From: Octopus sinensis
Lineage: Eukaryota
Direction: 5' to 3'
NCBI RefSeq assembly: GCF_006345805.1
Contig: NW_021836957.1
Coordinates: 1-22,325 of the forward strand
Length of the DNA: 22,325 nt
Part shown: positions 243-22,325 of the stretch, in pieces
How the letters are laid out: each line of letters opens with the position of its first letter
How positions within the stretch are numbered: position 1 is the first letter of the stretch
The notes under the pieces: model-generated
Database searches by the model: none
Told to the model about the DNA's origin: nothing
What the model saw: only the letters and a program-made list of their open reading frames with translations
Position numbers and translations under genes: made by a program

Positions 243-818
243 TTTAGAAGACCGGGACTGACCAGAGCAAGCCCTAGCCAGTCACGTCCTCCCCTCGCGT
301 CGACGTGGTTTGGCTCGCTCGAAGTCCGGATTTCCAGCCCGAGGTCTTCAACCAGCGTCTTCAGAGCCAAACCATGCGAGTTGGTTACCCTGAAACCAAG
401 ATCTTGATGCTTGGCATTCAGGTCCCCAACAACCATGGCCTTCGGATGCTTTTCAAAGAACTCCCGTACGTGCCAGGAGCACGCCGTAAAGTTCTTCGAG
501 TACATCCCACCTAGGTAAAATGTTAACTCGCCTATGCGAATTCTCACTTGGAGGAATTCACACAATCTACATGAACATATACCTGGACTCTGCAAGGCAA
601 GGTAGGGCTTGTAGAAGAGGCTAGTTCCTGTGCCACATATTGACCCCTGTTTCCAGGGTATGTGACGACAGTTGTAGCCATCAACTACGTACGGACCCCC
701 CTTTACCTTCGTTTCGTTGACCACCAGAATGTCCGCACTCGTGGTGGCCAACATCCTCTGAACGGCGTCCCTTTTTCCTTCCAAGGAACGCGCGTTCACC
801 GATATGATGTTGAGCATC
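243..818 (-). mobile_element. LINE family A, inverted ORF2 fragment covering the APE endonuclease domain
   Basis: Minus-strand translation MLNIISVNARSL..NETK..GDLNAKH..DWLGLALVSPGLL. Near-identical to 4911-5485. Starts at the ORF2 ATG. Confidence 0.9.
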
Positions 819-1159: not shown

Positions 1160-2624
1160 TCTGATCGTTTAATATCCACCACAACCGCACAGCATGCTGG
1201 TTCGCCACGTGTTTGCGGTTTGTCTAGTGGTACCAAACCCAGCCTAGGTAAGTCAATTAATGCCAACAGGGTGTCGTCTCCTGAGGCCGTCCCGGTGGGT
1301 ACGGCAGGAAATAAGGTTGCCCTTGAGGACGGTTGGTACACGGTGGGGAAACCCAAACGTGCGGCTGGCCGTCCAACCCCCCCTAATGTTTTAGGTACTG
1401 GGTGTGTGTCCGATCAGGCGGATGCACACCCAAAGAAGACCACTGGCGATGGGGGCAGAATTACCTTCGGTGCTGTGGCACGACTTGAGGTCCTCCCTAC
1501 AAGTGGGAAGGCCTCGGTCATAAAGATCTTAGGTACGTTAGACTCTATCCAGCCTTCAAAGCTGTATAGAGTCCTGAAGAGGGAGCCCACCCAATTCCTG
1601 CTTGGGTGGGAGAAGGAGGATGACTTCTCCAACTTCAAAGGGGAGCTGGAGAAGTCAAATCCGTTCGGTCCTGGCATGCATCGCCTTGTCAGGATCGAAC
1701 GTAAGGTAAGTAAGGTAAGTGTCCTCCTCCTCGGGGTTCCTCGGGACTTCGAGGATAATGACCTCCTAGGTCATCTGCAGCAGGAGTACCCCAGTGCCTC
1801 TGCCATTGCACGCTTCAAGCAGGGTAATCGCCCTCTTGAAGTGGTGGAGATTACACTGGGATCTCCTGCAGAAGCTGAGCGCCTGGTACTTCTTGGTACC
1901 AGGATCGGCTACATTAGGATGAGAGCTGCCTGGCCCCGCCCGAAAGCCACCCAATGCTTTCGGTGTCAGGGGTTCGGGCACATCTCCACAAAGTGCCCGG
2001 ATAAGGCGAAGTGCCTTATTTGCGGTGGGGAGCATGGTCGCAAGACGTGCCCCTCACCATCCAAGGAGAGGCAGTGTGTCAACTGTGGTAAGTTGGGACA
2101 CACTGCCAACTTCAGAGGTTGCCCCAAGTTCAAGGAGGCAACCCGAAAGGTAGGTGGGGATGTAATCCCAACAGTAAGTCGCCCGCGTCGCGCGCCCTGC
2201 GCCAAAACCTGGCAAGCAGGCGATACTGGCCAAACCTTCCAAATCCGTTTGGGTGGCGAAGACAGTGGAACCTGTGAGCCATGCTGCGTATGGGTCGGTG
2301 CAGCCTTCGCCGACAAAGTTGGCAAAGCAGGCGAAAGCTTCCGAGTCCGCTTGGTTGCCTAAGCCGGCAATGCCTTCCGAGGCGGCTAACGGCGGCACCG
2401 TCCGGCACAACGTGGGGCTGAAAAGGCGTCCTCCATACGTGGAGATGCCATTGCACTCAGCCCCTGGCGAGCGTGTACCGCAGGACAGTATTAGTCCTGC
2501 GGTGCAACTATGCGTTTCCCTATTAAAATTTTGTAGGGAGATGAATTGCAGTGTAGATGAAATGCTACACTGCAACGTTGCCGAGGCCAAGAAGATCCTT
2601 GGCGAAGAACGATGCAGCGATTAG
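1160..2624 (+). CDS. LINE ORF1p (gag-like nucleic-acid chaperone), 5'-truncated, one frameshift near 2190
   Basis: Three knuckles CFRCQGFGHISTKC, CLICGGEHGRKTC and CVNCGKLGHTANFRGC, as in I/Jockey/R1-type ORF1. The repeat copy at 6589-7860 reads through this frameshift. Confidence 0.85.
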
Positions 2625-3043
2625 GCGCGTTGCGTGCTTTCCACTTGAGGAGAGGTGCCTGGTTCCGTGTGTTCAACGCCATGGTGTTACCCGTGTTACC
2701 TATGGCGTGCACGCTTGGCACTTCTGCGAGGACAGGGAAAAGCACGTTGACGCGCTTAAGAAAGTAAGAAGACGAGCCATCCGGCTAGCCTATGGCTTAG
2801 GATGGCGTGATGAGCTCTCCAACGCCCAGGAATTGTCCCTCAAAGGCCTCCCTGAGGTCCTAGAGAAGATAATGACTGGGTGGCAGGTAAGACGGTAAGT
2901 CCTAACCTGTTTGTTGTAGAGAGGCGAGCGTGTGTGCTGGACCGAAAAGGCAGGAATGCCGAAGGTCTCCTTATGTTACCTCACTAACAGCCTCTCTAAT
3001 TAATTATTAAATAAAAAATTTCCATTTAAAAAAAAAAAAAAAA
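1160..3043 (+). mobile_element. LINE family A, ORF2-deleted derivative: ORF1, last ~95 codons of ORF2, 3' UTR, poly(A)
   Basis: ORF1 end (GAAGAAC) is joined at ~2610 to the ORF2 C-terminus (ATGCAGCGATTAGG). The 3' UTR matches 16832-16956. AATAAA at 3010-3015 and A16 at 3028-3043. Confidence 0.9.
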
Positions 3044-3081
3044 CTTGCAAATTTTGTGGATAATGGCACCTAAAGTTAGCA
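3044..3081 (+). pseudogene. H2B: Histone H2B 5' fragment (19-nt leader + MAPKVS)
   Basis: CTTGCAAATTTTGTGGATAATGGCACCTAAAGTTAGCA is identical to the reverse complement of the H2B start at 9552/15581. Confidence 0.9.
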
Positions 3082-3183
3082 AAAAATAATAAAATATGGC
3101 TAGAACAAAACAAACGGCTCGAAAATCTACTGGTGCAAAAGTACCAAGGACAGTTGTCTGCAAAATCTGCTCGCAAGCTGTCT
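3082..3183 (+). pseudogene. H3: Histone H3 5' fragment (leader + N-terminal tail to about K27)
   Basis: ATG at 3096 gives [25 protein letters not shown]. Three bases are missing relative to the copy at 8413. Confidence 0.9.
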
Positions 3184-3215
3184 GCCTAAGAAGACTATGC
3201 AGAAGTGGAGGTGTT
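3184..3215 (+). pseudogene. H4: Histone H4 internal fragment (RRLCRSGGV)
   Basis: TAAGAAGACTATGCAGAAGTGGAGGTGTT resembles local H4 ATAAGAAGACTATGTCGAAGAGGGGGTGTT ([10 protein letters not shown]). It appears to come from a different paralogue. Confidence 0.7.
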
Positions 3216-3263
3216 CCCGCCTCGCTCTCCCAGAAGGACAAGACGGTTCACTGTGCCACTACG

Positions 3264-4911
3264 ATGAATTGCCGGAGCCGTGGTTCACCGCCACGCGCTT
3301 CCGGCTATTCTAGTGGTGTCTTTAATTTTCTAGGCGAAAGCAGGAAGGAGAAGTCGAAGCCTGGACCCTCCCAGGTGGTTCAGCACTCACTGGAGACACT
3401 TCTTTCTCTGCTCCCCCTATGGCTGGTGTCGGGGAGCTGCAGGTGCAACTGGTTCTGATCGTTGGTATCCACCACAACCGCACAGCATGCTGGTTCGCCA
3501 CGTGTTTGCGGTTTGTCTAGTGGTACCAAACCCAGCCTAGGTAAGTCAATTAATGCCAACAGGGTTCGTCTCCTGAGGCCGTCCCGGTGGGTACGGCAGG
3601 AAATAAGGTTGCCCTTGAGGACGGTTGGTACACGGTGGGGAAACCCAAACGTGCGGCTGGCCGTCCAACCCCCCCTAATGTTTTAGGTACTGGGTGTGTG
3701 TCCGATCAGGCGGATGCACACCCAAAGAAGACCACTGGCGCCGGGGGCAGAATTACCTTCGGTGCTGTGGCACGACTTGAGGTCCTCCCTACAAGTGGGA
3801 AGGCCTCGGTCATAAAGATCTTAGGTACGTTAGACTCTATCCAGCCTTCAAAGCTGTATAGAGTCCTGAAGAGGGAGCCCACCCAATTCCTGCTTGGGTG
3901 GGAGAAGGAGGATGACTTCTCCAACTTCAAAGGGGAGCTGGAGAAGTCAAATCCGTTCGGTCCTGGCATGCATCGCCTTGTCAGGATCGAACGTAAGGTA
4001 AGTAAGGTAAGTTCCTCCTCCTCGGGGTTCCTCGGGACTTCGAGGATAATGACCTCCTAGGTCATCTGCAGCAGGAGTACCCCAGTGCCTCTGCCATTGC
4101 ACGCTTCAAGCAGGGTAATCGCCCTCTTGAAGTGGTGGAGATTACACTGGGATCTCCTGCAAAGCTGAGCGCCTGGTACTTCTTGGTACCAGGATCGGCT
4201 ACATTAGGATGAGAGCTGCCTGGCCCCGCCCGAAAGCCACCCAATGCTTTCGGTGTCAGGGGTTCGGGCACATCTCCACAAAGTGCCCGGATAAGGCGAA
4301 GTGCCTTATTTGCGGTGGAGAGCATGGTCGCAAGACGTGCCCCTCACCATCCAAGGAGAGGCAGTGTGTCAACTGTGGTAAGTTGGGACACACTGCCAAC
4401 TTCAGAGGTTGCCCCAAGTTCAAGGAGGCAACCCGAAAGGTAGGTGGGGATGTAATCCCAACAGTAAGTCGCCCGCGTCGCGTCGCGCGCCCTGCGCCAA
4501 AACCTGGCAAGCAGGCGATACTGGCCAAACCTTCCAATCCGTTTGGGTGGCGAAGACAGTGGAACCTGTGAGCCATGCTACGTGTGGGTCGGTGCAGCCT
4601 TCGCCGACAAAGTTGGCAAAGCAGGTGAAAGCTTCCGAGTCCGCTTGGTTGCCTAAGCCGGCAATGCCTTCTGAGGCGGCTAACGGCGGCGCCGTCCGGC
4701 ACAACCTGGGGCTGAAAAGGCGTCCTCCATACGTGGAGATGCCATTGCACCAGCCCCTGGCGAGCGTGTACCGCAGGACAGTATTAGTCCTGCGGTGCAA
4801 TTATGCGTTTCCCTATTAAAATTTTGTAGGGAGATGAATTGCAGTGTAGAGGAAATGCTACACTGCAACGTTGCCGAGGCCAAGAAGATCCTTGGCGAAG
4901 AACCGATATGA
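3264..4911 (+). CDS. LINE ORF1p, putative full length, several single-base indels
   Basis: Candidate start MNCRSRG at 3264. Contains the zinc knuckles and ends ..KKILGEEPI* (TGA 4909-4911). The start is inferred and the frame is open upstream of it. Confidence 0.7.
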
Positions 4912-6545
4912 TGCTCAACATCATATCGGTGAACGCGCGTTCCTTGGAAGGAAAAAGGGACGCCGTTCAGAGGATGTTGGCCACCACGAGTGCGGACATT
5001 CTGGTGGTCAACGAAACGAAGGTAAAGGGGGGTCCGTACGTAGTTGATGGCTACAACTGTCGTCACATACCCTGGAAACAGGGGTCAATATGTGGCACAG
5101 GAAACTAGCCTCTTCTACAAGCCCTACCTTGCCTTGCAGAGTCCAGGTATATGTTCATGTAGCTTGTGTGAATTCCTCCAAGTGAGAATTCGCATAGGCG
5201 AGTTAACATTTTACCTAGGTGGGATGTACTCGAAGAACTTTACGGCGTGCTCCTGGCACGTACGGGAGTTCTTTGAAAAGCATCCGAAGGCCATGGTTGT
5301 TGGGGACCTGAATGCCAAGCATCAAGATCTTGGTTTCAGGGTAACCAACTCGCATGGTTTGGCTCTGAAGACGCTGGTTGAAGACCTCGGGCTGGAAATC
5401 CGGACTTCGAGCGAGCCAAACCACGTCGACGCGAGGGGGACGTGACTGGCTAGGGCTTGCTCTGTGGTCAGTCCCGGTCTTCTAAATTGGGTTAGTAAAA
5501 CTATTTTATTGTCCGATATTGGGAGCGACCATCTGCCTCTATTGCACGAACTCCGTGAGCAGTTCCTCAAAGGGTCCCAGGATACTTTGACCTCCGGGTG
5601 GGTTCCTGGGCTAACCTGGAGAGTTTCATGGCCAGCAGGTTGCCCTCACTTCTGGTGGGGAATACCTGCGCCAACATACGTGAGTTGGAGGCGCTTGATA
5701 ATGGAATCAATGCTGCCCTGACTGATTACATGCGAGATAATTTCAAACAAAACTCAGTGCAGGGTCAGGCACATTCCACGCTCCCTCACCGGATCTTAAA
5801 TAAAATTAGGTTCAAGCGCCGGCTATCCAGACTACGGGACAAATGCGTTTACGAGGAGAACCGTGTTTGGTTTCGTGGCTGGATTAGCCGGCTTCAGAGG
5901 GAGATCCGAAGAGAAATCCGCGAACTCGAAAGTTCGCGGTGGGAGAGGGCCTGCCGAAGGGTGGACCCTCGCTTTCCGGACTTCTGGAAGCAGTTGAAGA
6001 GCCTGTCGGGGAGAAGGGGGCTAAGTCAGTGCGCCTTAAACGCTCTGATGGAACCCTCGCTTCGGACCCGGTTGAGGTGGTTGAAATACTTTCACCCCAT
6101 CTCAATGGCATCTCGGGAACTGACGGAAGTCAGTTCGTAGAGACATCGTCCTTTGATACTGTCCAGCAGATATTGTCGTGGGACAAGCGCTGCCAGCTGG
6201 GCATATCAAGGAACGATGCAGGCGAAATTACTGAAGCGGAGATTCTGGCAGCAATCTCCCGAAGTAAGAACACCGCGGCGGGTTTGGATCGGATCCCGAT
6301 GGCCATCTTTAAGAAGGCCCCGCCGCGGTTAATCACTGCACTAAAGGTTTTATTTAACGGGAGCTTGCGACTTGGGATAATTCCCTCCAGGTGGAAAGTG
6401 GCTGAGGTAATCCTTATCGGAAAGCCCGGGAAGCCACATGATGTCCCCGGGGGATATAGGCCCATTTCCTTGCTCCCCGCGGTATCTAAAATCCTAGAAA
6501 GAATTATGCACCAAAGGCTCCTGGAGGAGCTGATGGTTGCAGACG
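4908..6545 (+). CDS. LINE ORF2p, endonuclease + linker + N-terminal RT, truncated and with indels
   Basis: APE motifs VNARSL, NETK, GDLNAKH, SDHLP, then KNTAAGLDRIP, WKVAEVILIGKPGK, YRPISLL. Confidence 0.9.
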
Positions 6546-8360
6546 TGGTACCAAACCCAGCCTAGGTAAGTCAATTAATGCCAACAGGGTGTCGTCTCCT
6601 GAGGCCGTCCCGGTGGGTACGGCAGGAAATAAGGTTGCCCTTGAGGACGGTTGGTACACGGTGGGGAAACCCAAACGTGCGGCTGGCCGTCCAACCCCCC
6701 CTAATGTTTTAGGTACTGGGTGTGTGTCCGATCAGGCGGATGCACACCCAAAGAAGACCACTGGCGATGGGGGCAGAATTACCTTCGGTGCTGTGGCACG
6801 ACTTGAGGTCCTCCCTACAAGTGGGAAGGCCTCGGTCATAAAGATCTTAGGTACGTTAGACTCTATCCAGCCTTCAAAGCTGTATAGAGTCCTGAAGAGG
6901 GAGCCCACCCAATTCCTGCTTGGGTGGGAGAAGGAGGATGACTTCTCCAACTTCAAAGGGGAGCTGGAGAAGTCAAATCCGTTCGGTCCTGGCATGCATC
7001 GCCTTGTCAGGATCGAACGTAAGGTAAGTAAGGTAAGTGTCCTCCTCCTCGGGGTTCCTCGGGACTTCGAGGATAATGACCTCCTAGGTCATCTGCAGCA
7101 GGAGTACCCCAGTGCCTCTGCCATTGCACGCTTCAAGCAGGGTAATCGCCCTCTTGAAGTGGTGGAGATTACACTGGGATCTCCTGCAGAAGCTGAGCGC
7201 CTGGTACTTCTTGGTACCAGGATCGGCTACATTAGGATGAGAGCTGCCTGGCCCCGCCCGAAAGCCACCCAATGCTTTCGGTGTCAGGGGTTCGGGCACA
7301 TCTCCACAAAGTGCCCGGATAAGGCGAAGTGCCTTATTTGCGGTGGGGAGCATGGTCGCAAGACGTGCCCCTCACCATCCAAGGAGAGGCAGTGTGTCAA
7401 CTGTGGTAAGTTGGGACACACTGCCAACTTCAGAGGTTGCCCCAAGTTCAAGGAGGCAACCCGAAAGGTAGGTGGGGATGTAATCCCAACAGTAAGTCGC
7501 CCGCGTCGCGCGCCCTGCGCAAAACCTGGCAAGCAGGCGATACTGGCCAAACCTTCCAAATCCGTTTGGGTGGCGAAGACAGTGGAACCTGTGAGCCATG
7601 CTGCGTATGGGTCGGTGCAGCCTTCGCCGACAAAGTTGGCAAAGCAGGCGAAAGCTTCCGAGTCCGCTTGGTTGCCTAAGCCGGCAATGCCTTCCGAGGC
7701 GGCTAACGGCGGCACCGTCCGGCACAACGTGGGGCTGAAAAGGCGTCCTCCATACGTGGAGATGCCATTGCACTCAGCCCCTGGCGAGCGTGTACCGCAG
7801 GACAGTATTAGTCCTGCGGTGCAACTATGCGTTTCCCTATTAAATTTTGTAGGGAGATGAATTGCAGTGTAGATGAAATGCTACACTGCAACGTTGCCGA
7901 GGCCAAGAAGATCCTTGGCGAAGAACGATGCAGCGATTAGGCGCGTTGCGTGCTTTCCACTTGAGGAGAGGTGCCTGGTTCCGTGTGTTCAACGCCATGG
8001 TGTTACCCGTGTTAACCTATGGCGTGCACGCTTGGCACTTCTGCGAGGACAGGGAAAAGCACGTTGACGCGCTTAAGAAAGTAAGAACGAGCCATCCGGC
8101 TAGCCTATGGCTTAGGATGGCGTGATGAGCTCTCCAACGCCCAGGAATTGTCCCTCAAAGGCCTCCCTGAGGTCCTAGAGAAGATAATGACTGGGTGGCA
8201 GGTAAGACGGTAAGTCCTAACCTGTGGTTGTGTAGAGAGGCGAGCGTGTGTGCTGGACCGAAAAGGCAGGAATGCCGAAGGTCTCCTTATGTTACCTCTC
8301 ACTAACAGCCTCTCTAATTAATTATTAAATAAAATTTCCATTTAAAAAAAAAAAAAAAAA
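6546..8360 (+). mobile_element. Second copy of the ORF2-deleted family A derivative
   Basis: ORF1 frame 6589-7860, deletion junction at ~7925, 3' UTR, A17 at 8344-8360. Confidence 0.9.
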
Positions 8361-8535
8361 CTTGCAAATTTTGTGGATAATGGCACCTAAAGTTAGCAAA
8401 AAATAATAAAATATGGCTAGAACAAAACAAACGGCTCGAAAATCTACTGGTGCAAAAGTACCAAGGAAACAGTTGTCTGCAAAATCTGCTCGCAAGCTGT
8501 CTGCACTAAGAAGACTATGCAGAAGTGGAGGTGTT
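8361..8535 (+). pseudogene. Second copy of the H2B/H3/H4 fragment chimera
   Basis: H2B ATG 8380 (MAPKVSKK*). H3 ATG 8413 reads [41 protein letters not shown]. Confidence 0.9.
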
Positions 8536-9266
8536 CCCGCCTCGCTCTCCCAGAAGGACAAGACGGTTCAGTGTGCCACTACGATGAATTGCCGGAGCCG
8601 TGGTTCACCGCCACGCGCTTCCGGCTATTCTAGTGGTGTCTTTAATTTTCTAGGCGAAAGCAGGAAGGAGAAGTCGAAGCCTGGACCCTCCCAGGTGGGT
8701 TCAGCACTCACTGGAGACACTTCTTTCTCTGCTCCCCTATGGCTGGTGTCGGGGAGCTGCAGGTGCAACTGGTTCTGATCGTTTGGTATCCACCACAACC
8801 GCACAGCATGCTGGTTCGCCACGTGTTTGCGGTTTGTCTAGTGTACCAAACCCAGCCTAGGTAAGTCAATTAATGCCAACAGGGTGTCGTCTCCTGAGGC
8901 CGTCCCGGTGGGTACGGCAGGAAATAAGGTTGCCCTTGGACGGCGTTGGTACACGGTGGGGAAACCCAAACGTGCGGCTGGCCGTCCAACCCCCCCTAAT
9001 GTTTTAGGTACTGGGTGTGTGTCCGATCAGGCGGATGCACACCCAAAGAAGACCACTGGCGCCGGGGGCAGAATTACCTTCGGTGCTGTGGCACGACTTG
9101 AGGTCCTCCCTACAAGTGGGAAGGCCTCGGTCATAAAGATCTTAGGTACGTTAGACTCTATCCAGCCTTCAAAGCTGTATAGAGTCCTGAAGAGGGAGCC
9201 CACCCAATTCCTGCTTGGGTGGGAGAAGGAGGATGACTTCTCCAACTTCAAAGGGGAGCTGGAGAA
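8536..9266 (+). mobile_element. LINE family A 5' part, truncated in ORF1
   Basis: Matches 3216-3945. Joins antisense H2B at a shared AGAA (9263-9266). Confidence 0.9.
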
Positions 9267-9552
9267 TCAGACGAACTGCAGTCTGTATTTCACGTGAGGT
9301 AATGGTAGCCTTCGAATTCTGATAGACTAGATTTGATGCCTCGGTTTTTATTTTGTCATAAACATCAAATGTGAAACTGTCCATAGCCATCATAGCCTTC
9401 TTTGACATCCCAAGTTGATTATGTACTGTCTTTAAAATTTTCATAAGATATATGGAAAAAGTTTTCCTTTTCTTTTTTTTTTGTAGCAACAGAACATTTT
9501 TGCTTTTTATAGGAGCTCTTTTTTGTCCCTTTGTGCTAACTTTAGGTGCCAT
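9263..9552 (-). pseudogene. H2B: Histone H2B, 3'-truncated at the LINE junction
   Basis: [53 protein letters not shown]. The last ~25 codons are missing compared with 15217-15581. Confidence 0.9.
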
Positions 9553-9598
9553 TATCCACAAAATTTGCAAGTTTTGAAGTGAAAAAATCTCATATAAT

Positions 9599-9660
9599 AA
9601 AAAAGTATCATTCCGAAATTTTGTTGAGTAATTCAAAAAAAGTATAATTCCAAAATTTTT
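9599..9660. promoter_or_regulatory. Two copies of a candidate histone promoter motif upstream of H2B
   Basis: AAAAAGTATCATTCCGAAATTTT (~9600-9622) and AAAAAGTATAATTCCAAAATTTT (~9637-9659). A TATA-like TTATTATAT lies on the minus strand at ~9592-9600. Confidence 0.65.
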
Positions 9661-9666
9661 GAAGTT

Positions 9667-9837
9667 GACGGGATGACCCTTTTCCCATTTGAAAGAGGAA
9701 AAGGCCTCGTATGGCATGCAAGCTGCTGGGATACTTTCTCTGTTTCACATCTAACCTCGTGTGCTCTGGAGGCTAAATCAGCTACTAAAAAGCCTGAAGA
9801 TTTAAAGCTTTCCAAATATTCTGCCCTTTTGGAATAA
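9667..9837 (+). mobile_element. Relic of a CRE/NeSL-like non-LTR element, restriction-like endonuclease (N-terminal part)
   Basis: My translation DGMTLFPFERGKGLVWHASCWDTFSVSHL..LKLSKYSAL resembles the PDGxTLxPWxRGKxLxWDxTCxDT..K..KY signature. Recognised by eye, not searched. Confidence 0.65.
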
Positions 9838-9929
9838 AATATCAAGAGGAATTCTGCAAGGGGACTCTTTGTCTCCACAGCTATTTGTTTTGGTGATGGA
9901 TACTTTGAGTAGGATGTATTGATGTTTTA

Positions 9930-10214
9930 GTTATTATAACACATTCCGTGGGAACATAAACAAAGTTATAATCCCACACGTGTCACAAGCGAAACAATCT
10001 TCTGGACCATCCTTGTCCATGCCCTTCTGTTGCGGGCGAGATCCCGTAAAGATTCTAGGTCGTCCCAGTTTTTGAAACTTTTGTCATGAAGTTTGAGATC
10101 CCTTTCAAGAACTGTCGGAAGAGTGGATCTAGGTCTTCCACGATATTTGTCTCCATGTTCGGAGAAATAATCGTCCATTGCCCGATTGGCCGGAGCTCTG
10201 GGGTCCACTCGCAA
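9930..10214 (-). mobile_element. 3' end of an RTE-like LINE, 5'-truncated
   Basis: PANRAMDDYF..YRGRPRSTL..LRDLARNRRAWTRMV is typical of an RTE-clade C-terminus and is homologous to 14560-14794. The 3' boundary is approximate. Confidence 0.75.
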
Positions 10215-10478
10215 ATAATTCTCTAAATAAACATAATTATAAACAGATGCAAAAAAATAAAATATTAGAAAAAAATAAATTTTTCAAACGATATAACTCT
10301 AATTTATTGTATAAATATACTTTTTGTTATTTCAACAAGATTTCTTACCAATTAAAAAAGCAATCGTAGTATTTCACCGTCGTTTGGTAGCTAGTTAGTA
10401 TATTTATGAAATTGCTAATTTTTATCTGGTTAATTTGTAAGGAATATCAATGTATTTTATTAAAAAAATTATGTATAA

Positions 10479-10786
10479 TTATCCACCAAATCCGTAAATT
10501 GTCCTACCTTGACGTTTCAAGGCATTAACAACCATTGCGATAACAGTTTTTCTTTTGGCATGTTCAGTATAGGAAATACAATCACGAACAGTTTGCTCAA
10601 TAAAAATCTTAAGGACAGAACGTGTCTCCTCGTAAATTTTTCCAGAAATTCTTCGAACACCCCCCCTCTTCGACATAGTCTTCTTATTGCTGGCTTAGTA
10701 ATTCCTTGTATATTGTCAATTAATATCTTTCGAAATCGTTTTGCACCACTCTTTCCTCCTTTGCCACCTTTACCACGTCCAGACAT
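10479..10786 (-). CDS. H4: Histone H4 (indels here; intact copy at 16505-16813)
   Basis: [51 protein letters not shown]. One indel lies in a C-homopolymer near 10660. Confidence 0.92.
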
Positions 10787-10941
10787 TGAAAAATTCTCTA
10801 AATGAACACTATTTTCAACCTATGCACAAAAAGTATCATTGCCAAATTTTTTCAAAAGGACCATTCCGAAAAAAATTTTCAACTAAATTTCGGAATGCCA
10901 TTTTTTTTATTATGTAAATAAAAAATAGTTAGCAGAGTATA
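10787..10941. promoter_or_regulatory. 155-bp bidirectional H4/H2A promoter with three motif copies
   Basis: AAAAAGTATCATTGCCAAATTTT (~10828), CCATTCCGAAAAAAATTTT (10861), and an inverted AAATTTCGGAATGCCATTTTTT (~10886). Initiator-like TCATTT on the minus strand near 10803. Confidence 0.7.
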
Positions 10942-13243: not shown

Positions 13244-13660
13244 TTATGTTTTTTCACCTCGAATTCTTCTCGATAAATGCATATCGTTTGGCATTATAGT
13301 TACTCTTTTTCCGTGAATTGCACACAAATTACTATCTTCAAAAATTCCACAATAGGTAACTCTCTGCCGCTTCTTGGAGAGCAACAATCGCTGACGATTG
13401 AAAACGCAAATCAGTTTTGATAAACTGAGCGGTTTCTCTCACGAGTCTCTGGAATGGAAGTTTTCGTAGTAACAAATCAGTGCTCTTTTGATACGTCTGT
13501 CTCGATTTCTCGCATTGCAACAACTCCAGGTCGAAATCGATGAGGTTTCTTTACCCCTCCAAATTGTGAAACAGACTTGCGAGCAGATTTTGCAGACAAT
13601 TGTTTCTTTGGAACTTTTGCTCCAGTAGAATTTTCGAGCAGTTTGTTTAGTTCTAGCCAT
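13244..13660 (-). CDS. H3: Histone H3, full length, ~3 frame disruptions (pseudogene or read error)
   Basis: [77 protein letters not shown]. Confidence 0.88.
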
Positions 13661-13688: not shown

Positions 13689-13754
13689 TATTATATAGTT
13701 AAACAACATTATTCCGAATTTTTTCGAGAAAAAGTATCATTCCGAAAATTTTTT
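13689..13754. promoter_or_regulatory. H3 promoter: TATA box plus two motif copies
   Basis: Minus-strand TATATAA near 13690-13697. CATTATTCCGAATTTTTT (~13707) and AAAAAGTATCATTCCGAAAATTTT (~13729). Confidence 0.65.
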
Positions 13755-13793: not shown

Positions 13794-14833
13794 TACTGGA
13801 ACAATTCCTGGACCCTGACTCTGTCAATATGATAAGAGTACTACTATCGAACACAAAGCTCAAGGTGCGGGTCGGCACGGCGTTTTCCCGTGAATTCACG
13901 TGCAACCTCGGTACCCCTCAGGGAGACGCCCTCTCGCCGTTGCTATTCGTGATCTATCTGGAGACGGCACTACGAGACCTTCGAAAATTCTATGCTGGCA
14001 ATATCGTCGAAATTGTATATGCAGATGACGTCGACTTCGTGTCAGACTACAAATCGTCCTTACTTCGACTCCTTGAAGTGGCACCTGCTGAGCTGAACAG
14101 ATGGTTCCTTAAAATGAACGTTGGAAAAAACGACATCGTTGAAATCATGAGGATGGAGAGCAGCTCAAGTGAAGCCTGGCGCAAAACGAACAAACTCGGT
14201 TCTCTACTTGGGGACGGCCATGAATTGTCAGAAGAAAGGCTCTCGCTGGGCCACGATGAACAAGATAAAGAAAGAGTGGATCGGCAAACGACGACTCTGT
14301 ACGTCACTTCGTCTGAGGATGTATGAAGCCTTGTCAAACCAATCCTGACATATAATTCGGCGACCTGGGGAATGTCTAGTACTGAACAACGTGGACTCGA
14401 TTCTTTTCACCGCAGGCAACTTAGATCCCTACTGGGATTGAACTGGCCTATAAGAATCAACCAGGAATCGCTATACAATAGATGCAGAACTGGCCCTCTG
14501 AGTGTGGAAATCGTCAATATGCGGTGGAGGTTATTTGGCCATATTCTACGAATGGACATGCTTGCCCCAGCTAATATAGCAATGGAGGGCTACTTCCTGA
14601 AAGAGGGATCGAGCTTCCGTGGACGTCCACGTGTTACGCTGCCGGAAACACTTGACGGAGACCTGAAATGTGTGAAGAAAAGGCTAAGGAGTGGTGAGGA
14701 TCTGGACGAGCTGAGGAAAGTCGCTCACGACAGAGGAGGTTGGAGGAGGCTGGTTCAAAAGATTGTTTTTAATGCTGCACGAGTAAAATTATAACTAATA
14801 TGATTCTACGTATGTTGCAAATAATAATAATAA
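13794..14833 (+). mobile_element. 5'-truncated RTE-like LINE with (AAT)n tail and 14-bp target-site duplication
   Basis: RT motifs GTPQGDALSPLLF and YADDVDF, C-terminal RWRLFGHILRM..GRPRVTL. AAT repeats at ~14819-14836. TAAATATTTTTAAA occurs at both 13780-13793 and 14834-14847. Confidence 0.9.
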
Positions 14834-15216: not shown

Positions 15217-15581
15217 TTATTTTGTATTCGTGTACTTAGTAACTGCCTTTGCACCCTCTGTAATAGCATGTTTTGCCAATTCACCGGGAAGAATCAGACG
15301 AACTGCAGTCTGTATTTCACGTGAGGTAATGGTAGCCTTCGAATTCTGATAGACTAGATTTGATGCCTCGGTTTTTATTTTGTCATAAACATCAAATGTG
15401 AAACTGTCCATAGCCATCATAGCCTTCTTTGACATCCCAAGTTGATTATGTACTGTCTTTAAAATTTTCATAAGATATATGGAAAAAGTTTTCCTTTTCT
15501 TTTTTTCTTTGTAGCAACAGAAACATTTTTGCTTTTTATAGGAGCTCTTTTTTGTCCCTTTGTGCTAACTTTAGGTGCCAT
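15217..15581 (-). CDS. H2B: Histone H2B, full length, one indel in the A-rich K-run
   Basis: [41 protein letters not shown]. Confidence 0.92.
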
Positions 15582-15626
15582 TATCCACAAAATTTGCAAG
15601 TTTGAAGTGAAAAAATCTCATATAAT

Positions 15627-15688
15627 AAAAAAGTATCATTCCGAAATTTTGTTGAGTAATTCAAAAAAAGTATAATTCCAAAATTTTT
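15627..15688. promoter_or_regulatory. H2B promoter motif pair (duplicate)
   Basis: Same sequence as 9599-9660. Confidence 0.65.
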
Positions 15689-15694
15689 GAAGTT

Positions 15695-15867
15695 GACGGG
15701 ATGACCCTTTCCCATTTGAAAGAGGAAAAGGCCTCCTCGTATGGCATGCAAGCTGCTGGGATACTTTCTCTGTTTCACATCTAACCTCGTGTGCTCTGGA
15801 GGCTAAATCAGCTACTAAAAAGCCTGAAGATTTAAAGCTTTCCAAATATTCTGCCCTTTTGGAATAA
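15695..15867 (+). mobile_element. Duplicate CRE-like endonuclease relic
   Basis: Near-identical to 9667-9837. Confidence 0.65.
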
Positions 15868-15959
15868 AATATCAAGAGGAATTCTGCAAGGACTCTTTGT
15901 CTCCACAGCTATTTGTTTTGGTGATGGATACTTTGAGTAGGATGTATTGATGTTTTAGT

Positions 15960-16240
15960 TATTATAACACATTCCGTGGGAACATAAACAAAGTTATAAT
16001 CCCACACGTGTCACAAGCGAAACAATCTTCTGGACCATCCTTGTCCATGCCCTTGTTTGCGGGCGAGATCCCGTAAAGATTCTAGGTCGTCCCAGTTTTT
16101 GAAACTTTTGTCATGAAGTTTGAGATCCTTTCAAGAACTGTCGGAAGAGTGGATCTAGGTCTTCCACGATATTTGTCTCCATGTTCGGAGAAATAATCGT
16201 CCATTGCCCGATTGGCCGGAGCTCTGGGGTCCACTCGCAA
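15960..16240 (-). mobile_element. Duplicate RTE-like 3' fragment
   Basis: Near-identical to 9930-10214. Confidence 0.75.
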
Positions 16241-16504
16241 ATAATTCTCTAAATAAACATAATTATAAACAGATGCAAAAAAATAAAATATTAGAAAAAA
16301 ATAAATTTTTCAAACGATATAACTCTAATTTATGTATAAATATACTTTTTGTTATTTCAACAAGATTTCTTACCAATTAAAAAAGCAATCGTAGTATTTC
16401 ACCGTCGTTTGGTAGCTAGTTAGTATATTTATGAAATTGCTAATTTTTATCTGGTTAATTTGTAAGGAATATCAATGTATTTTATTAAAAAAATTATGTA
16501 TAAT

Positions 16505-16813
16505 TTATCCACCAAATCCGTAAATTGTCCTACCTTGACGTTTCAAGGCATTAACAACGTCCATTGCGATAACAGTTTTTCTTTTGGCATGTTCAGTATA
16601 GGAAATACAATCACGAACAGTTTGCTCAATAAAAATCTTAAGGACAGAACGTGTCTCCTCGTAAATTTTTCCAGAAATTCTTCGAACACCCCCTCTTCGA
16701 CATAGTCTTCTTATTGCTGGCTTAGTAATTCCTTGTATATTGTCAATTAATATCTTTCGAAATCGTTTTGCACCACTCTTTCCTCCTTTGCCACCTTTAC
16801 CACGTCCAGACAT
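16505..16813 (-). CDS. H4: Histone H4, intact ORF (102 codons), upstream promoter replaced by a LINE
   Basis: Uninterrupted [20 protein letters not shown]. Confidence 0.96.
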
Positions 16814-16956
16814 TGAAAAATTCTCTAAATGGAAATTTTTTATTTAATAATTAATTAGAGAGGCTGTTAGTGAGGTAACATAAGGAGACCTTCGGCATTC
16901 CTGCCTTTTCGGCCCAGCACACACGCTCGCCTCTCTACACAACCACAGGTTAGGAC

Positions 16957-19564
16957 TTACCGTCTTACCTGCCACCCAGTCATTATCTTCTCTAGGACCT
17001 CAGGGAGGCCTTTGAGGGACAATTCCTGGGCGTTGGAGAGCTCATCACGCCATCCTAAGCCATAGGCTAGCCGGATGGCTCGTCTTCTTACTTTCTTAAG
17101 CGCGTCAACGTACTTCTCCCTGTCCTCGCAGAAGTGCCAAGCGTGCACGCCATAGGTTAACACGGGTAACACCATGGCGTTGAACACACGGAACCAGGCA
17201 CCTCTCCTCAAGTGGAAAGCACGCAACGCGCCTAATCGCTGCATTGCACGCATTTTAGTGCGTGCAATGTGATCATCGAACTTACCTGACTGCTTGAAGA
17301 CCACGCCCAAGTAGGTCGTCCGATCAACTATAGCGATTGCTGACCCGTCCAGCGATAACCTAGGGATAAAATTAGTGTAACCCCTCGTCCTTTTACAGAC
17401 TTTAAGGACACTGCACTTGTCCGCACACATCTTTAGACCCCTACTCCCACACCAGTGTACAAGTTCATCCACAGCAACCTGTAGCCTACGACACGCACAC
17501 TCAGGTTTCATCGACTGATCCCAGAGGATAATGTCGTCTGCATAGATCACCATTTCAGTACGAGCATTGACTGGCATAGGCGCAGAGGCCATAAAGATAT
17601 TAAACAGTGTGGGACTCAGCACAGAACCCTGAGGGACCCCGCGAAGGACTGTTCCGACTTTAGAAAAGACCCCTGGTGTCGCACGACCGATGACCGCGAG
17701 ATTCGAGGAACCCCACAGCCAGCGCCTTAGACACGGAGAAACCCCACACGTGGCGAGGGAACTCCGCAGGCCGTCGTGCCACACCGAGTCGAAGGCCTTT
17801 TCTATGTCAAGACTAACTAACATACCAAACTCACTTTTCTGGAGGGCGTTTTTCATTTCGGAAGACACCTTCCACAAGCAGTCTCCACATGAACGACCCT
17901 CCCTGAAGCCCCATTGGAACTCCGGGAGGGCGTCAACCACCGTCAGCTCCTCCAGGAGCCTTCGGTGCATGATTTTTTCTAGGATTTTAGATATAGCGGG
18001 AAGCAAGGAAATGGGCCTATATCCCCCGGGGACATCATGAGGCTTCCCAGGTTTTCCAATGAGGATTACCTCAGCCACTTTCCACCTGGAAGGAATCATC
18101 CCAAGTCGCAAGCTCCCGCTAAACAAAACCTGTAAGGCCGTGATCAACAACGGCGGGGCCTTTTTGAAGATGGACATAGGGATCCGATCTAGCCCCGCCG
18201 CGGTGTTCTTACTTCGGGAGATCGCTTCCAGGATCTCCCTTTCGGAAACTTCGCCTGCATCGCCCCTTGTTATGTCCAGCTGGCAGCGCTTGTCCCAAGA
18301 CAATACCTCCTGGATAGTAACAAAAGACGACGTCTCTACGAACTGACTTCCGTCAGTTCCCGAGATGTTGTTGAGGTGGGTTGAAAATATATCAGCCACC
18401 TCAACCGGGTCCGAGGCGAGGGTTCCATCAGAGCGCTTAAGGCGCACTGACTTTGCCTCCCCTCTCCCCGACAGGCTCTTCAGTTGTTTCCAGAAGTCCG
18501 GAAAGCGCGGGTCCACTCTTTGACAGGCCCGCTCCCACCGTGAACTTTCGTGTTCACGGATTTCCCTCCGGATCTCCCTCTGAAGCCGGCTGATCCAGCC
18601 GCGAAACCAGACACGGTTCTCCTGGTACACGCATTTGTCCCGCAGTCTGGACAGCCGGCGCTTGAATCTAATTTTATTTAGCACCCGGTACGGGAGCGTG
18701 GAATGTGCCTGGCCCTGTACTGGGTTCTGTTTGAAATTATCTCGCATTAATCAGACAGGGCAGCATTGATTCCATTATCTAACGCCTCCAACTCTCGTAT
18801 GTTGGCGCAGGTTTTCCCCACCAGAAGTGAGGGCAACCTGCTGGCCATGAAACTCTCCAGGTTAGCCAGGAACCCACCCGGAGGTCAAAGTATCCTGGGA
18901 CCCTTGAGGAACTGGCTCACGAAGTTCGTGCAATAGAGGCAGATGGTCGCTCCCAATATCGGGCAATAAAATAGTTTTACTAACCCAATTTAGAGAGACC
19001 GGGACTGACCAGAGCAAGCCCTAGCCAGTCACGTCCTCCCCTAGTGTCGACGTGGTTTGGCTCGCTCGAAGTCCGGATTTCCAGCCCGAGGTCTTCAACC
19101 AGCGTCTTCAGAGCCAAACCATGCGAGTTGGTTACCCTGAAACCAAGATCTTGATGCTTGGCATTCAGGTCCCCAACAACCATGGCTTCGGATGCTTTTC
19201 AAAGAACTCCCGTACGTGCCAGGAGCACGCCGTAAAGTTCTTCGAGTACATCCCACCTAGGTAAAATGTTAACTCGCCTATGCGAATTCTCACTTGGAGG
19301 AATTCACACAAGCTACATGAACATATACCTGGACTCTGCAAGGCAAGGTAGGGCTTGTAGAAGAGGCTAGTTCCTGTGCCACATATTGACCCCTGTTTCC
19401 AGGGTATGTGACGACAGTTGTAGCCATCAACTACGTACGGACCCCCCCTTACCTTCGTTTCGTTGACCACCAGAATGTCCGCACTCGTGGTGGCAACATC
19501 CTCTGAACGGCGTCCCTTTTTCCTTCCAGGAACGCGCGTTCACCGATATGATGTTGAGCATCAT
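16957..19564 (-). CDS. LINE ORF2p (APE endonuclease + reverse transcriptase, no RNase H seen)
   Basis: 596 codons are open (16957-18747) with QWGFREGRS, SLDIEKAFDSVWH, GVPQGSVLSPTLFNIF, YADD and YLGV. The endonuclease part has single-base indels. Confidence 0.93.
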
Positions 19565-20098
19565 ATCGGTTCTTCGCCAAGGATCTTCTTGGCCTCGGCA
19601 ACGTTGCAGTGTAGCATTTCCTCTACACTGCAATTCATCTCCCTACAAAATTTTAATAGGGAAACGCATAATTGCACCGCAGGACTAATACTGTCCTGCG
19701 GTACACGCTCGCCAGGGGCTGAGTGCAATGGCATCTCCACGTATGGAGGACGCCTTTTCAGCCCCAGGTTGTGCCGGACGGCGCCGCCGTTAGCCGCCTC
19801 AGAAGGCATTGCCGGCTTAGGCAACCAAGCGGACTCGGAAGCTTTCACCTGCTTTGCCAACTTTGTCGGCGAAGGCTGCACCGACCCACACGTAGCATGG
19901 CTCACAGGTTCCACTGTCTTCGCCACCCAAACGGATTTGGAAGGTTTGGCCAGTATCGCCTGCTTGCCAGGTTTTGGCGCAGGGCGCGCGACGCGACGCG
20001 GGCGACTTACTGTTGGGATTACATCCCCACCTACCTTTCGGGTTGCCTCCTTGAACTTGGGGCAACCTCTGAAGTTGGCAGTGTGTCCCAACTTACCA
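19561..20098 (-). CDS. LINE ORF1p C-terminal part
   Basis: GKLGHTANFRGCPKFKEA..KKILGEEPI*, open frame. Confidence 0.88.
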
Positions 20099-21200
20099 TA
20101 GATTCCGAGCACATTGGTAATGAGCTAAGATTGTCTTCCAACTCTTTTTCCATATCAAACAAAGCTGAATCAGATAGATTTGTATCCGGATTGACTTCTT
20201 GTATTCTTTGAGACTATCAGCAAATATGTTCGGGATTTCTTCATGAGATGCAGGGGATCCATCTTGTTTTAGCAGTTTAGGTATAGTTTTCTCAGACGTC
20301 GAGGTTAATTTCGAGTAGACCTTCCAAAAATTTGGACTTCCTTATGTAGCTTTTTGCACTCAGTATTCCATTTTTTATCCTTCGCCACCTTCGCCGATTT
20401 TCTTATTTCTTCCGTAATGGTGAAGATTTCACTTTCCAAAACGGACCGGTCACGAAAATCTGCGCAGCGCCGGAGTTTGTTCCTTAGACATTGTTTTTTC
20501 CTTAGTAGGATTTCAACATTCATGTTTGGCATGTGAGTTTTCCTATTGTTTGAGACGATTTTTGTAGAATATGTTTCCAGATAAGACTTTATGTATCCAA
20601 TAAGGGAATTGCTAGACTTCTCGAGGTCCTCAGATGAAGAATTTTCGTCAAGTTTAGGAGCGAAATTGCTCAGATAAAGTGTAAAACATTTTCGGTAGTG
20701 TTCCCAGTTTATAGTCGAGAGGTTATATCGTATAAAAGTTGGTTTACCCTTAAAGGTCCAAGGTTGAGTTTGTATTAAAATTGGTAGATGGTCACTTCAA
20801 TATCATTTAAGGTGTACGGTTGTTCCATAAATTGAAGAGTAGACATAGAGACCAATGCTACGCCCAAATAGTCCCACCCTCCTGGTGAGTAATGATTTGG
20901 GGTTTTTGATGTGATGACCGAGAAACTGAGAGATTCTGAAAGCTTCTTAAGAATGATGCCATCCCTGTTGGTTCTCAGACAGCCAAAAGATGTGCATTTG
21001 GCATTTAGATCCCCGAGGAGTATTGACAAATGATTGTGTTTATCGGCAAAAAAGTCCTTGATAAGCGATGAATAATTGGAAAGGGATTTTGAGTATGTTC
21101 CTAAAAAAAAACATTTGTATGTTGGAATGGAATGGAAAGTTTTATTGTAAGCAAATCAGAGACTTAGTGTAAAGGTTGGACGAGGTTAAACGAGACGACT
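20099..21200 (-). mobile_element. LINE family B (more AT-rich relative of A): degenerate endonuclease + linker, truncated at both ends
   Basis: LLGDLNAK..TPNHYSPGGWDYLGVALVS..(frameshift)SDHLP, then KCLRNKLRR..EEIRKSAKVAKDKKWNTEC, collinear with family A. The 5' boundary is approximate. Confidence 0.8.
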
Positions 21201-21289
21201 GCAAGGACAGTCGAGCTCTACCGAGATTCGTCCTAAGAGAGTATACGAGCCGTCCTTTGATTAGAGTCACTCTCTGATTGAGTTACATG

Positions 21290-21607
21290 AGCCTGAATGC
21301 TTCTGAGCCTGTATGCTTCTGAGCCTGTATGCTTCTGAGCTTTCTGGGCTTCTGAGCCTGTATGCTTCTGAGCCTGTATGCTTCTGAGCTTTCTGGGCTT
21401 CTGAGCCTGTATGCTTCTGAGCTTTCTGGGCTTCTGAGCCTGTATGCTTCTGAGCCTGTATGCTTCTGAGCTTTCTGGGCTTCTGAGCCTGTATGCTTCT
21501 GAGCTTTCTGGGCTTCTGAGCCTGTATGCTTCTGAGCCTGTATGCTTCTGAGCCTGTATGCTTCTGAGCTTTCTGGGCTTCTGAGCTTTCTGGGCTTCTG
21601 AGCTTTC
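21290..21607. repeat. Two-unit minisatellite (16-bp A, 17-bp B)
   Basis: A=GCTTCTGAGCCTGTAT, B=GCTTCTGAGCTTTCTGG. Order from 21299: AABAABABAABABAAABB plus a partial unit. Confidence 0.95.
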
Positions 21608-21866
21608 TTTCCTGACGTTTAGTCAGCAAGAGGCGCTAGACTGCACCTTCTCGAAGGTCTACAGTGCCAGAGAAGAAGAAGAAAAGGAAGAAAAGAGGAG
21701 GTGCGTGGGTGCCACCTTCTGCTCACTTCGAAGGCTCTGGACTTAGTAAAATTACTTAGTTTCTTTTTTTAATAAAGCTAGTTAGTATATTTATGAAATT
21801 GCTAATTTTTATCTGGTTAATTTGTAAGGAATATCAATGTATTTTATTAAAAAAATTATGTATAAT

Positions 21867-22175
21867 TTATCCACCAAATCCGTAAATGTCCTACCTTGAC
21901 GTTTCAAGGCATTAACAACGTCCATTGCGATAACAGTTTTTTCTTTTGGCATGCTCAGTGTAAGAAATACAATCACGAACAGTTTGCTCAATAAAAATCT
22001 TAAGGACAGAACGTGTCTCCTCGTAAATTTTTCCAGAAATTCTTCGAACACCCCCTCTTCGACATAGTCTTCTTATTGCTGGCTTAGTAATTCCTTGTAT
22101 ATTGTCAATTAATATCTTTCGAAATCGTTTTGCACCACTCTTTCCTCCTTTGCCACCTTTACCACGTCCAGACAT
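21867..22175 (-). CDS. H4: Histone H4, third copy (slightly different paralogue, 1-2 indels)
   Basis: Same protein start. Substitutions near 21955-21965 and leader ATTTAGAGAATTTTTCCTA. Similarity to the other copies spans 21776-22194 only. Confidence 0.88.
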
Positions 22176-22194
22176 TAGGAAAAATTCTCTAAAT

Positions 22195-22304
22195 CCTTTT
22201 CTTTTTTTTCCTTTGTAGCAACAGAAACATTTTTGCTTTTTATAGGAGCTCTTTTTTGTCCCTTTGTGCTAACTTTAGGTGCCATTATCCACAAAATTTG
22301 CAAG
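22195..22304 (-). pseudogene. H2B: Histone H2B 5' fragment (19-nt leader + ~30 codons) fused head-to-tail to the H4 leader
   Basis: ATG at 22285. Identity to native H2B stops at 22304 upstream and at ..AAAAGG (22195) downstream. Confidence 0.9.
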
Positions 22305-22325
22305 GTCTTTCCGGGGGGAAAAACA

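Follow-up and report, generated by a model that had tools for sequence, protein, structure and literature searches.

Histone RNA 5' ends as probable heads of LINE-derived segments in a divergent histone gene array

Introduction

Why do junctions between histone genes and retrotransposon fragments fall repeatedly on the same nucleotide shortly before a histone start codon? This question is raised by a stretch of 22.3 kb, here called the window (positions 1 to 22,325, forward strand, of contig NW_021836957.1 in an Octopus sinensis assembly), which is an AT-rich histone gene array broken up by a GC-rich non-LTR retrotransposon, family A, and which also contains remnants of LINEs other than family A. 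Site-specific non-LTR elements reside in several multicopy genes, namely R1/R2 in rDNA, Utopia/Keno in U2 and Mutsu in 5S. An initial annotation of the window had offered two options: either family A inserts at histone transcription starts, or it copies histone mRNAs to their 5' ends and then jumps to another RNA.

Materials and Methods

Comparison contigs (L001 to L010) were collected by look-ups starting from the window. An exact-protein look-up matched the window H4 on two unplaced contigs of GCA_006345805.1, and further look-ups yielded four more contigs bearing family A and one more with histones. All compared loci belong to this single assembly, and the sequence is error-rich, with many 1-nt indels. 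The GC content of L001-L007 ranges from 33 to 49%, and that of the mixed contigs L003-L005 and L007 from 36 to 39%. The 3' ends of family A were assembled into a catalogue of 12 tails. Repeats within the window were located by self-BLAST, protein domains and RNA families were assigned with Pfam and Rfam, and printed junctions were inspected by eye for target-site duplications.

Results and Discussion

The native part of the array comprises H2B (ATG at 9549-9551, minus strand), H4 (10490-10786, minus strand), H2A (from 10942, plus strand) and H3 (ending at 13660, minus strand), and a second histone unit is present at 15290-16831 as a copy of 9263-10804 with 98.8% identity. AATAAA follows the histone stop codons in the window, and the Rfam scan of the window returned no RNA family, the histone 3' stem-loop in particular not being detected. 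Family A is an APE-endonuclease/reverse transcriptase LINE: its ORF2 matches the Pfam families RVT_1 (1.3e-36), Exo_endo_phos_2 (1.1e-07) and Exo_endo_phos (5.3e-07), and the ORF2 homologues carry PF03372, PF14529 and PF00078. Three CX2CX4HX4C motifs, candidates for the zinc knuckles of a Jockey/I/CR1-like gag, are readable in ORF1, with a Pfam zf-CCHC score of 18 bits, under the cut-off of 20.8. Close relatives of ORF2 are limited to three proteins annotated in the Octopus sinensis assembly; beyond these, the best matches are about 31% identical and mostly from insects. The ORF1 homology search gave a single match, which led to contig L006.

As had been claimed initially, the junctions recur at one nucleotide upstream of histone start codons, and every junction quoted in support was present at its coordinates. 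For H4, the native leader (10787-10803, minus strand) reads gtgttc|ATTTAGAGAATTTTTCA-ATG with +1 at 10803, and the same nucleotide forms the non-native boundaries at 16830 and 22194. At 16830, the leader (16814-16830, minus strand) directly follows a family A tail as ...aaaaaatttcc|ATTTAGAGAATTTTTCA-ATG. This tail ends in ...TTTCCATTTA, so that 6 nt, CATTTA (16826-16831), are common to tail and leader and the breakpoint cannot be fixed within them; since CATTTA occurs five times per native 5.1-kb unit, this junction taken alone is weak evidence. At 22194, the H4 leader stands downstream of position +110 of an H2B segment (...gaaaagg|ATTTAGAGAATTTTTCCTA-ATG). The native H2B leader (9552-9570, minus strand) reads cacttcaaaa|CTTGCAAATTTTGTGGATA-ATG with +1 at 9570 and, in the second unit, at 15600. 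Its non-native boundaries are 3044, equivalent to 8361, where the leader follows a run of 15-16 A and the breakpoint is ambiguous by 4 nt, and 22304, where it follows ...tgtttttccccccggaaagac and the boundary is fixed on the C of CTTGC.

Two details of the initial description had to be corrected. The junctions at 3044 and 8361 had been listed side by side; they represent one event, as 1227-3949 and 6545-9269 are the same sequence at 99.0% identity, with differences that are mostly 1-nt indels. Furthermore, the sequence ahead of 22304 had been called unrelated, yet the 21 nt at 22305-22325 (minus strand), with which the window ends, consist of TGTTTTTCCCCCCGG plus 6 extra nucleotides, AAAGAC, and match the tail type made of a T-run, a C-run and GG that is found at L002:7640 and L006:3956. 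Judged by this resemblance, they are probably the tail of a second subfamily of family A, and the 22304 junction is probably another case of a tail joined to H2B +1.

A third type of boundary was found for H3, the leader of which starts directly after H2B +38 at about 3082-3084 and again at 8399-8401, that is 12-14 nt before the H3 ATG (3096 and 8413), and which continues for 28 codons before GC-rich sequence leads into ORF1 of family A. The boundaries of H4, H2B and H3 sit 12-19 nt upstream of their ATGs. The H2B boundary lies 28 nt downstream of the start of a TATA-like box, TATTATAT, and that of H4 coincides with an initiator-like TCATTT (TTCA+1TTT), in agreement with the initial proposal that it fits the initiator consensus. 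By chance, two independent non-native boundaries would agree within 0-4 nt in a unit of about 5 kb with a probability of around 1e-3 per gene; such agreement was found for H2B and for H4. Trans-splicing was considered as the origin of the common boundary and was ruled out, there being no AG before the boundaries.

Two further sequence features were observed. Each of the four histone genes has the motif TTCGGAATGATAC, in either orientation, at a distance of 28-47 nt upstream of its inferred start (9600-9625, 10815-10835, 10870-10900 and 13700-13725 in the window), and the motif is a candidate for a common promoter element. Between H4 and H2B, at 10228-10239 on the minus strand, ATTTAGAGAATT, identical to the first 12 nt of the H4 leader and expected by chance in the window about 0.02 times, precedes a 5'-truncated LINE remnant termed family D (ORF 9966-10214), a further LINE fragment with an H4-start head that lies inside the "native" unit.

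The junctions combine into two chains, in each of which the partners are joined directly and in one orientation and each histone segment begins at its +1. On the plus strand, the chain starts with the 3' end of an internally deleted family A copy, copy 1 (2941-3028, ending ...AAATTTCCATTTA; 2612-3028 aligns with 17244-16826 in the self-BLAST). This is followed by a 15-nt poly(A) (3029-3043) and, immediately after it, by H2B +1 to +38 (3044-3081), i.e., the 19-nt leader and 19 nt of coding sequence, identical to native 9570-9533 and 15600-15563. The H3 head comes next (3082-3177, +1 to about +97), derived from an H3 variant of which the full gene is present in L007, and then family A copy 2 (3178-6537), whose putative 5'UTR reaches up to about 3452 and is followed by ORF1, with the putative CCHC knuckles, and by ORF2, with the endonuclease and the first half of the reverse transcriptase. 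Copy 2 breaks at 6537 and is 96.7% identical to L006 8492-5035. The part 3029-3177 is repeated at 8345-8496 (plus strand), again with poly(A), an H2B head from 8361 and an H3 head with its ATG at 8413. On the minus strand, the probable subfamily 2 tail is followed by H2B +1 to +110 (22195-22304) and H4 +1 to +419 (21776-22194), the 3' end of which is joined to a sequence Y (21100-21775) leading into a second, AT-rich LINE (family C); then come a family A copy that is 5'-truncated in ORF1 (16826-20098), with a 596-aa reverse transcriptase open reading frame and no poly(A), and finally the H4 gene at 16830. Within Y, 21288-21608 is a tandem repeat with units of 16-17 nt (GAGCCTGTATGCTTCT / GAGCTTTCTGGGCTTCT) located between the H4 +419 joint and family C, and is probably a repetitive LINE 5'UTR.

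In both chains, every histone segment keeps its transcribed side, in sense, while the 3' ends are arbitrary: +38, about +97, +110 and +419. Moreover, neither H2B|H4 (22194) nor H2B|H3 (3082) contains any family A sequence, an observation that ties the boundary to the 5' end of the histone RNA. We consider it probable that the recurring breakpoints are the transcription starts of H4, H2B and H3, retained as the 5' ends of reverse-transcribed segments, and that they are not a DNA target of family A. The assignment of these putative starts is based on the TATA-like box and on initiator spacing, and the RNA intermediate of the histone-headed segments is likewise a putative one.

Rearrangement without any RNA intermediate, by unequal crossing-over, microhomology joining and fold-back duplication in a decaying array of histones and LINEs, could in principle have produced the same joints. 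Signs of such processes are clearly present. A direct duplication with a period of 5318 occupies 1227-9269; an inverted endonuclease segment (243-818, minus strand) is embedded among sense family A pieces; at 9269, ORF1 of family A (plus strand) is fused to the interior of H2B (minus strand) with a 3-nt overlap; and L007 holds an inverted H3-H3 pair. In addition, junction types recombine between contigs, and several joints show short microhomologies. However, rearrangement at the DNA level gives no reason why breaks should occur repeatedly 12-19 nt before the ATG of three genes, nor why the transcribed side should always be kept in sense relative to a LINE, and we regard it as quite unlikely to be the sole source of the junctions. 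The inversion at 243-818 and the fusion at 9269 are also consistent with twin priming or fold-back repair. The joint at 6537/6545 in the direct duplication connects the middle of the reverse transcriptase to the 5' region of family A, where the corresponding copy in L006 continues uninterrupted; it is therefore a rearrangement private to the window or else a misjoin made during assembly.

Comparison with the other contigs bears on the reality of the junctions. Confinement to one read had been named beforehand as an outcome that would speak against them, but the family A tail joined to H4, which had been described, and the H3 head joined to family A recur in other contigs of the assembly, and the junctions are accordingly no artefacts of a single read. 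The tail|H4 junction of the 16830 type is found again at L006:18070, and in a rearranged form with a tail of only 28 nt at L001:12593-12620. The H3|CTGTCTGCAC junction is common to the window, L006 and L007, the copies there being about 97% identical to that of the window, and the junction of H4 +419 with Y is present twice in L006 and twice in L007. These recurring junctions, which are genuine paralogues in the genome, differ by 2-4% between contigs. H2B|H3, H2B|H4 and tail|H2B were found in the window only, a restriction that would fit chimeric long reads, repeat misjoins or poor polishing of unplaced contigs, as would the many 1-nt indels in the window and the possibility that 1227-3949 and 6545-9269 are one locus assembled twice. 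Nevertheless, random chimeras would not be expected to break at leader starts, and the recurrence of three junction types with 2-4% divergence in two or three other contigs makes it very improbable that the junctions as a whole are artefacts of sequencing or assembly; those confined to the window may be.

The other contigs also contain loci that resemble sources of the heads. At L006 (minus strand, 8480) and L007 (plus strand, 15741), histone-promoter DNA carrying the motif TTCGGAATG, which is shared by all four promoters, is followed by 28 codons of H3 and then by family A, with no H2B ahead. Similarly, at L006:9078-9544 and L007:6350-6818 a native H4 promoter is followed by H4 and then by Y. 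Transcripts from the H3 start in the former loci would have exactly the H3 head of the window at their 5' ends, as in 5' transduction, and the head of copy 2 in the window likewise begins at the H3 leader. Complete 5' ends of family A subfamily 1 carry the H3 head in four of four cases, in three different upstream contexts. L006 and L007 have different promoter DNA ahead of the H3 head, that of L007 lying within the inverted H3-H3 duplication, and these loci may be recombinants rather than the original sources. No donor of the form H2B promoter-H2B(+38)-H3-family A, nor any other donor for the H2B heads, was found in the compared contigs. Exchange of junction types at the DNA level is evident from the H4 behind the tail, which has its native 3' flank at 16830 (the array continues for 1.5 kb, 15290-16831 corresponding to 9263-10804) versus Y at L006:18070. 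With its native flank, the H4 at 16830 fits a plain insertion at the H4 leader equally well as an RNA origin followed by gene conversion.

Where family A tails land bears on the first of the two original options, insertion of the element at histone starts. The 12 tails represent eight to nine junction types, four of them at non-histone sites and the others at H4 +1, H2B +1 (in two forms of tail), H4 -123 and H3 -87. On the histone side, every tail is oriented like the histone gene downstream of it and lies 0-123 nt from the ATG of that gene. Three of the six contigs bearing family A are histone arrays; one of the four that were reached via LINE proteins alone is such an array, with four copies. 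Within this sample, family A is genuinely associated with histone loci, in the form of an enrichment in these arrays, but it is not site-specific: four of the 12 tails (in L004 and L005 and at L002:7640 and L006:3956) lie away from histones. In L003-L005, tblastn detected no histones within 10 kb. The sequence caatttgga after the tail at L006:3956 was examined as a possible rest of H3 and turned out to be part of the zinc knuckle of a truncated LINE ORF1.

A LINE directed to histone start regions by an endonuclease nick or by RNA pairing, with the junctions as its DNA insertion sites, would account for the three kinds of tail at +1 (16830 on H4, 3044 on H2B and, probably, 22304 on H2B), for the orientation and proximity of the histone-side tails, for the histone array among the contigs reached through LINE proteins and for the 1.5 kb of native DNA beyond 16830. 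It leaves unexplained, however, the two boundaries free of family A, and it is difficult to reconcile with tails in promoter DNA 123 nt before the H4 ATG (L002:632) and 87 nt before the H3 ATG (L006:13500), i.e., not at +1, besides those distant from histones. The H2B sequence following the tails at 3044 and 22304 lasts for only 38 and 110 nt, and the 16830 junction could have been guided by the CATTTA microhomology alone. Furthermore, no copy was found with both flanks from one interrupted target: upstream stands an H3 head or another LINE, downstream a different histone gene, so that no 5'-side histone promoter matches the gene on the 3' side. Inspection of the printed junctions revealed no target-site duplication at any copy, which is explained by the fact that each chimeric copy is broken by further rearrangement. 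The headed copies are all interrupted short of their 3' end or adjoin another LINE, and rearrangement or the limit of the window has removed the ends of the chains. Taken together, insertion at histone starts by a target-specific LINE is an unlikely origin of the junctions.

For the origin of the junctions from histone RNA 5' ends we propose the following sequence of events. LINE copies are present in sense inside or just behind histone genes of the array, family A after H3 codon 28 and the second LINE with its leader Y after H4 +419, and histone promoters would give rise to chimeric RNAs running from the histone +1 into the LINE. The LINE reverse transcriptase would copy these RNAs as far as their 5' ends and might additionally jump, either to short 5' fragments from different histone RNAs or to a second LINE RNA at its 3' end; fresh copies would therefore begin exactly at a histone +1. 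The new copies would land again in the LINE-dense array, often beside a family A tail already in place or within the initial ~100 nt of H2B. Reverse transcription of family A is envisaged to start with the nicked target paired to the element's own 3' end, ...TTTCC(ATTTA), a pairing that would account for the usual absence of poly(A) and for the CATTTA overlap at 16830. Indeed, the tails mostly lack poly(A), and the first target bases tend to duplicate those at the end of the element (TTCC|TTCC, TCC|TCC, CCATTT|CCATT), a pattern suggestive of priming in which the nicked target pairs with the 3' end of the RNA. Subsequently, tandem duplication and homologous exchange between histone copies would have multiplied and recombined the junctions.

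The second original option, copying of histone mRNAs to their 5' ends followed by a jump, is therefore retained in part: the boundaries do behave as RNA 5' ends, but a simpler route than the jump is visible in the read-through loci of L006 and L007. For the H3 and H4 heads, these donor-like loci make read-through the preferred route. The H2B heads, for which no donor was found and where two different LINE tails adjoin +1, may have arisen more easily from jumps or from insertion next to existing tails. The best reading is that the heads arose by 5' transduction and/or template jumping.

L1 provides precedents for both processes, in heads mapping to host transcript starts (PMC11838501) and in double template jumps (PMC2104539). 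The LINE-1 5' transductions and chimeric insertions (PMC11838501) resemble the present case in having a sense host head, beginning at the transcript start (here a putative one), on a near full-length LINE, and in that the captured promoter region may drive further copies. In contrast, family A is not an L1, its nearest ORF2 relatives being insect elements of about 31% identity, the histone donors are intronless, the head is seemingly fixed in a whole subfamily and the copies stay in the donor array. The template-switch chimeras U6/L1 and MGL/WEIRD/Mg-SINE (PMC2104539, PMC4476161) likewise unite two or three RNA copies, head to tail and all oriented alike, with the 5' partner copied to its own 5' end and with double jumps on record. 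Known chimeras of this kind, however, combine a truncated LINE with a full-length partner, whereas here a full-length LINE is joined to short histone 5' pieces, with no flanking direct repeats found.

With R1/R2, Utopia/Keno and Mutsu, family A shares sense residence in tandem multicopy genes, likely co-transcription from the host promoter, and host sequence at the 5' end of the element RNA that could help 5' joining by homology. It differs in that there is no single insertion nucleotide, in that copies also occur outside histone arrays, and in that the gene family concerned is protein-coding and transcribed by polymerase II. The class of mechanism is already known; unusual are the histone donors, the H3 head seemingly fixed in a subfamily and the build-up in the donor array, always oriented with the next histone gene. 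Full-text literature searches did not find a histone-targeting or histone-headed LINE. If our reading is right, the junctions give the transcription starts of three histone genes at nucleotide level from DNA alone, and a LINE lineage exists that uses the 5' end of a host gene as its own head and lives mainly in the array of that gene family. The locus would further be a natural system for studying the borrowing of a polymerase II promoter by a LINE and a possible steering of 5' joining by host sequence on the element RNA, as has been proposed for R2.

A more far-reaching interpretation, which we put forward as speculative and on balance doubtful, is that family A subfamily 1 is a LINE resident in histone arrays, possibly of a dicyemid host, which has fixed the H3 leader and 28 codons as its own 5' end and depends on the histone promoter, with the H3 head of its cDNA guiding 5' joining to H3 genes through homology and the tail priming in histone promoter or leader DNA. 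Subfamily 1 would then be the counterpart of R1/R2 in rDNA for a polymerase II-transcribed, protein-coding gene, and ORF1 might be translated from the H3 ATG as a fusion to the H3 tail. In the consensus of three copies (window 3096-3560 and 8413-8880; L006:8480-7900, minus strand), the frame of the H3 ATG is open for 149 codons through the putative 5'UTR and is offset from ORF1, 1-nt indel errors being present. ORF1 of subfamily 1 is without an in-frame ATG of its own, whereas ORF1 of the L005 subfamily has one. An exact look-up of the 121-aa ORF containing the H3 head returned nothing on record.

Further observations concern other forms and neighbours of family A. An internally deleted variant, in which ORF1 is joined to the last 417 nt, is present in the window (2613 and 7929) and at L002:1-632. 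It seems to have spread as a non-autonomous derivative, since it has at least two different 3' flanks, poly(A) and H2B in the window versus H4 promoter DNA in L002. In L003, a doubly truncated copy of family A has a tRNA gene (8600-8671) and a U2 snRNA gene (14162-14351) as its neighbours within 5 kb, and family A may sit near other multicopy RNA genes too. Two isolated 78-nt matches (83-85%) to the family A 3'UTR, located away from any LINE body at L005:2660-2735 and L005:15038-15113, may be tails of a SINE-like partner. The segment L005:7844-8417 comprises diverged 18S rRNA sequence from the 3' part (Rfam model positions 1169-1823) together with some 170 nt of spacer. It immediately precedes, on the 5' side, a diverged family A copy of like orientation, without 5.8S after the element; this arrangement suggests that 5' capture of RNAs by family A extends beyond histones.

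Finally, the origin of the contigs themselves deserves comment. The four core histones are unusually divergent (window; L001, L007 and L008-L010): in our own comparison, H4 was about 80% identical to canonical animal H4, with F18, I23 and C38. Within the protein collection, this histone set is confined to unplaced O. sinensis contigs, one scaffold of 2.2 kb from the ant Vollenhovia emeryi and two Logan runs; the literature gave no match for run ERR12408770. The 18S fragment in L005 also looks divergent, departing from the consensus at a normally invariant stretch. The contigs match the GC content, the abundance of LINEs and the low gene density of the Dicyema japonicum genome. This kidney parasite was collected from O. 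sinensis, and its genome has 36.7% GC, 49% repeats, many LINE ORF2 copies and one gene per ~13 kb (PMC6736024). On the basis of the divergent histones and of this match, it is plausible that the contigs belong not to the octopus but to one of its dicyemid parasites, in which case DNA of a parasite carries octopus gene annotations in a public assembly.
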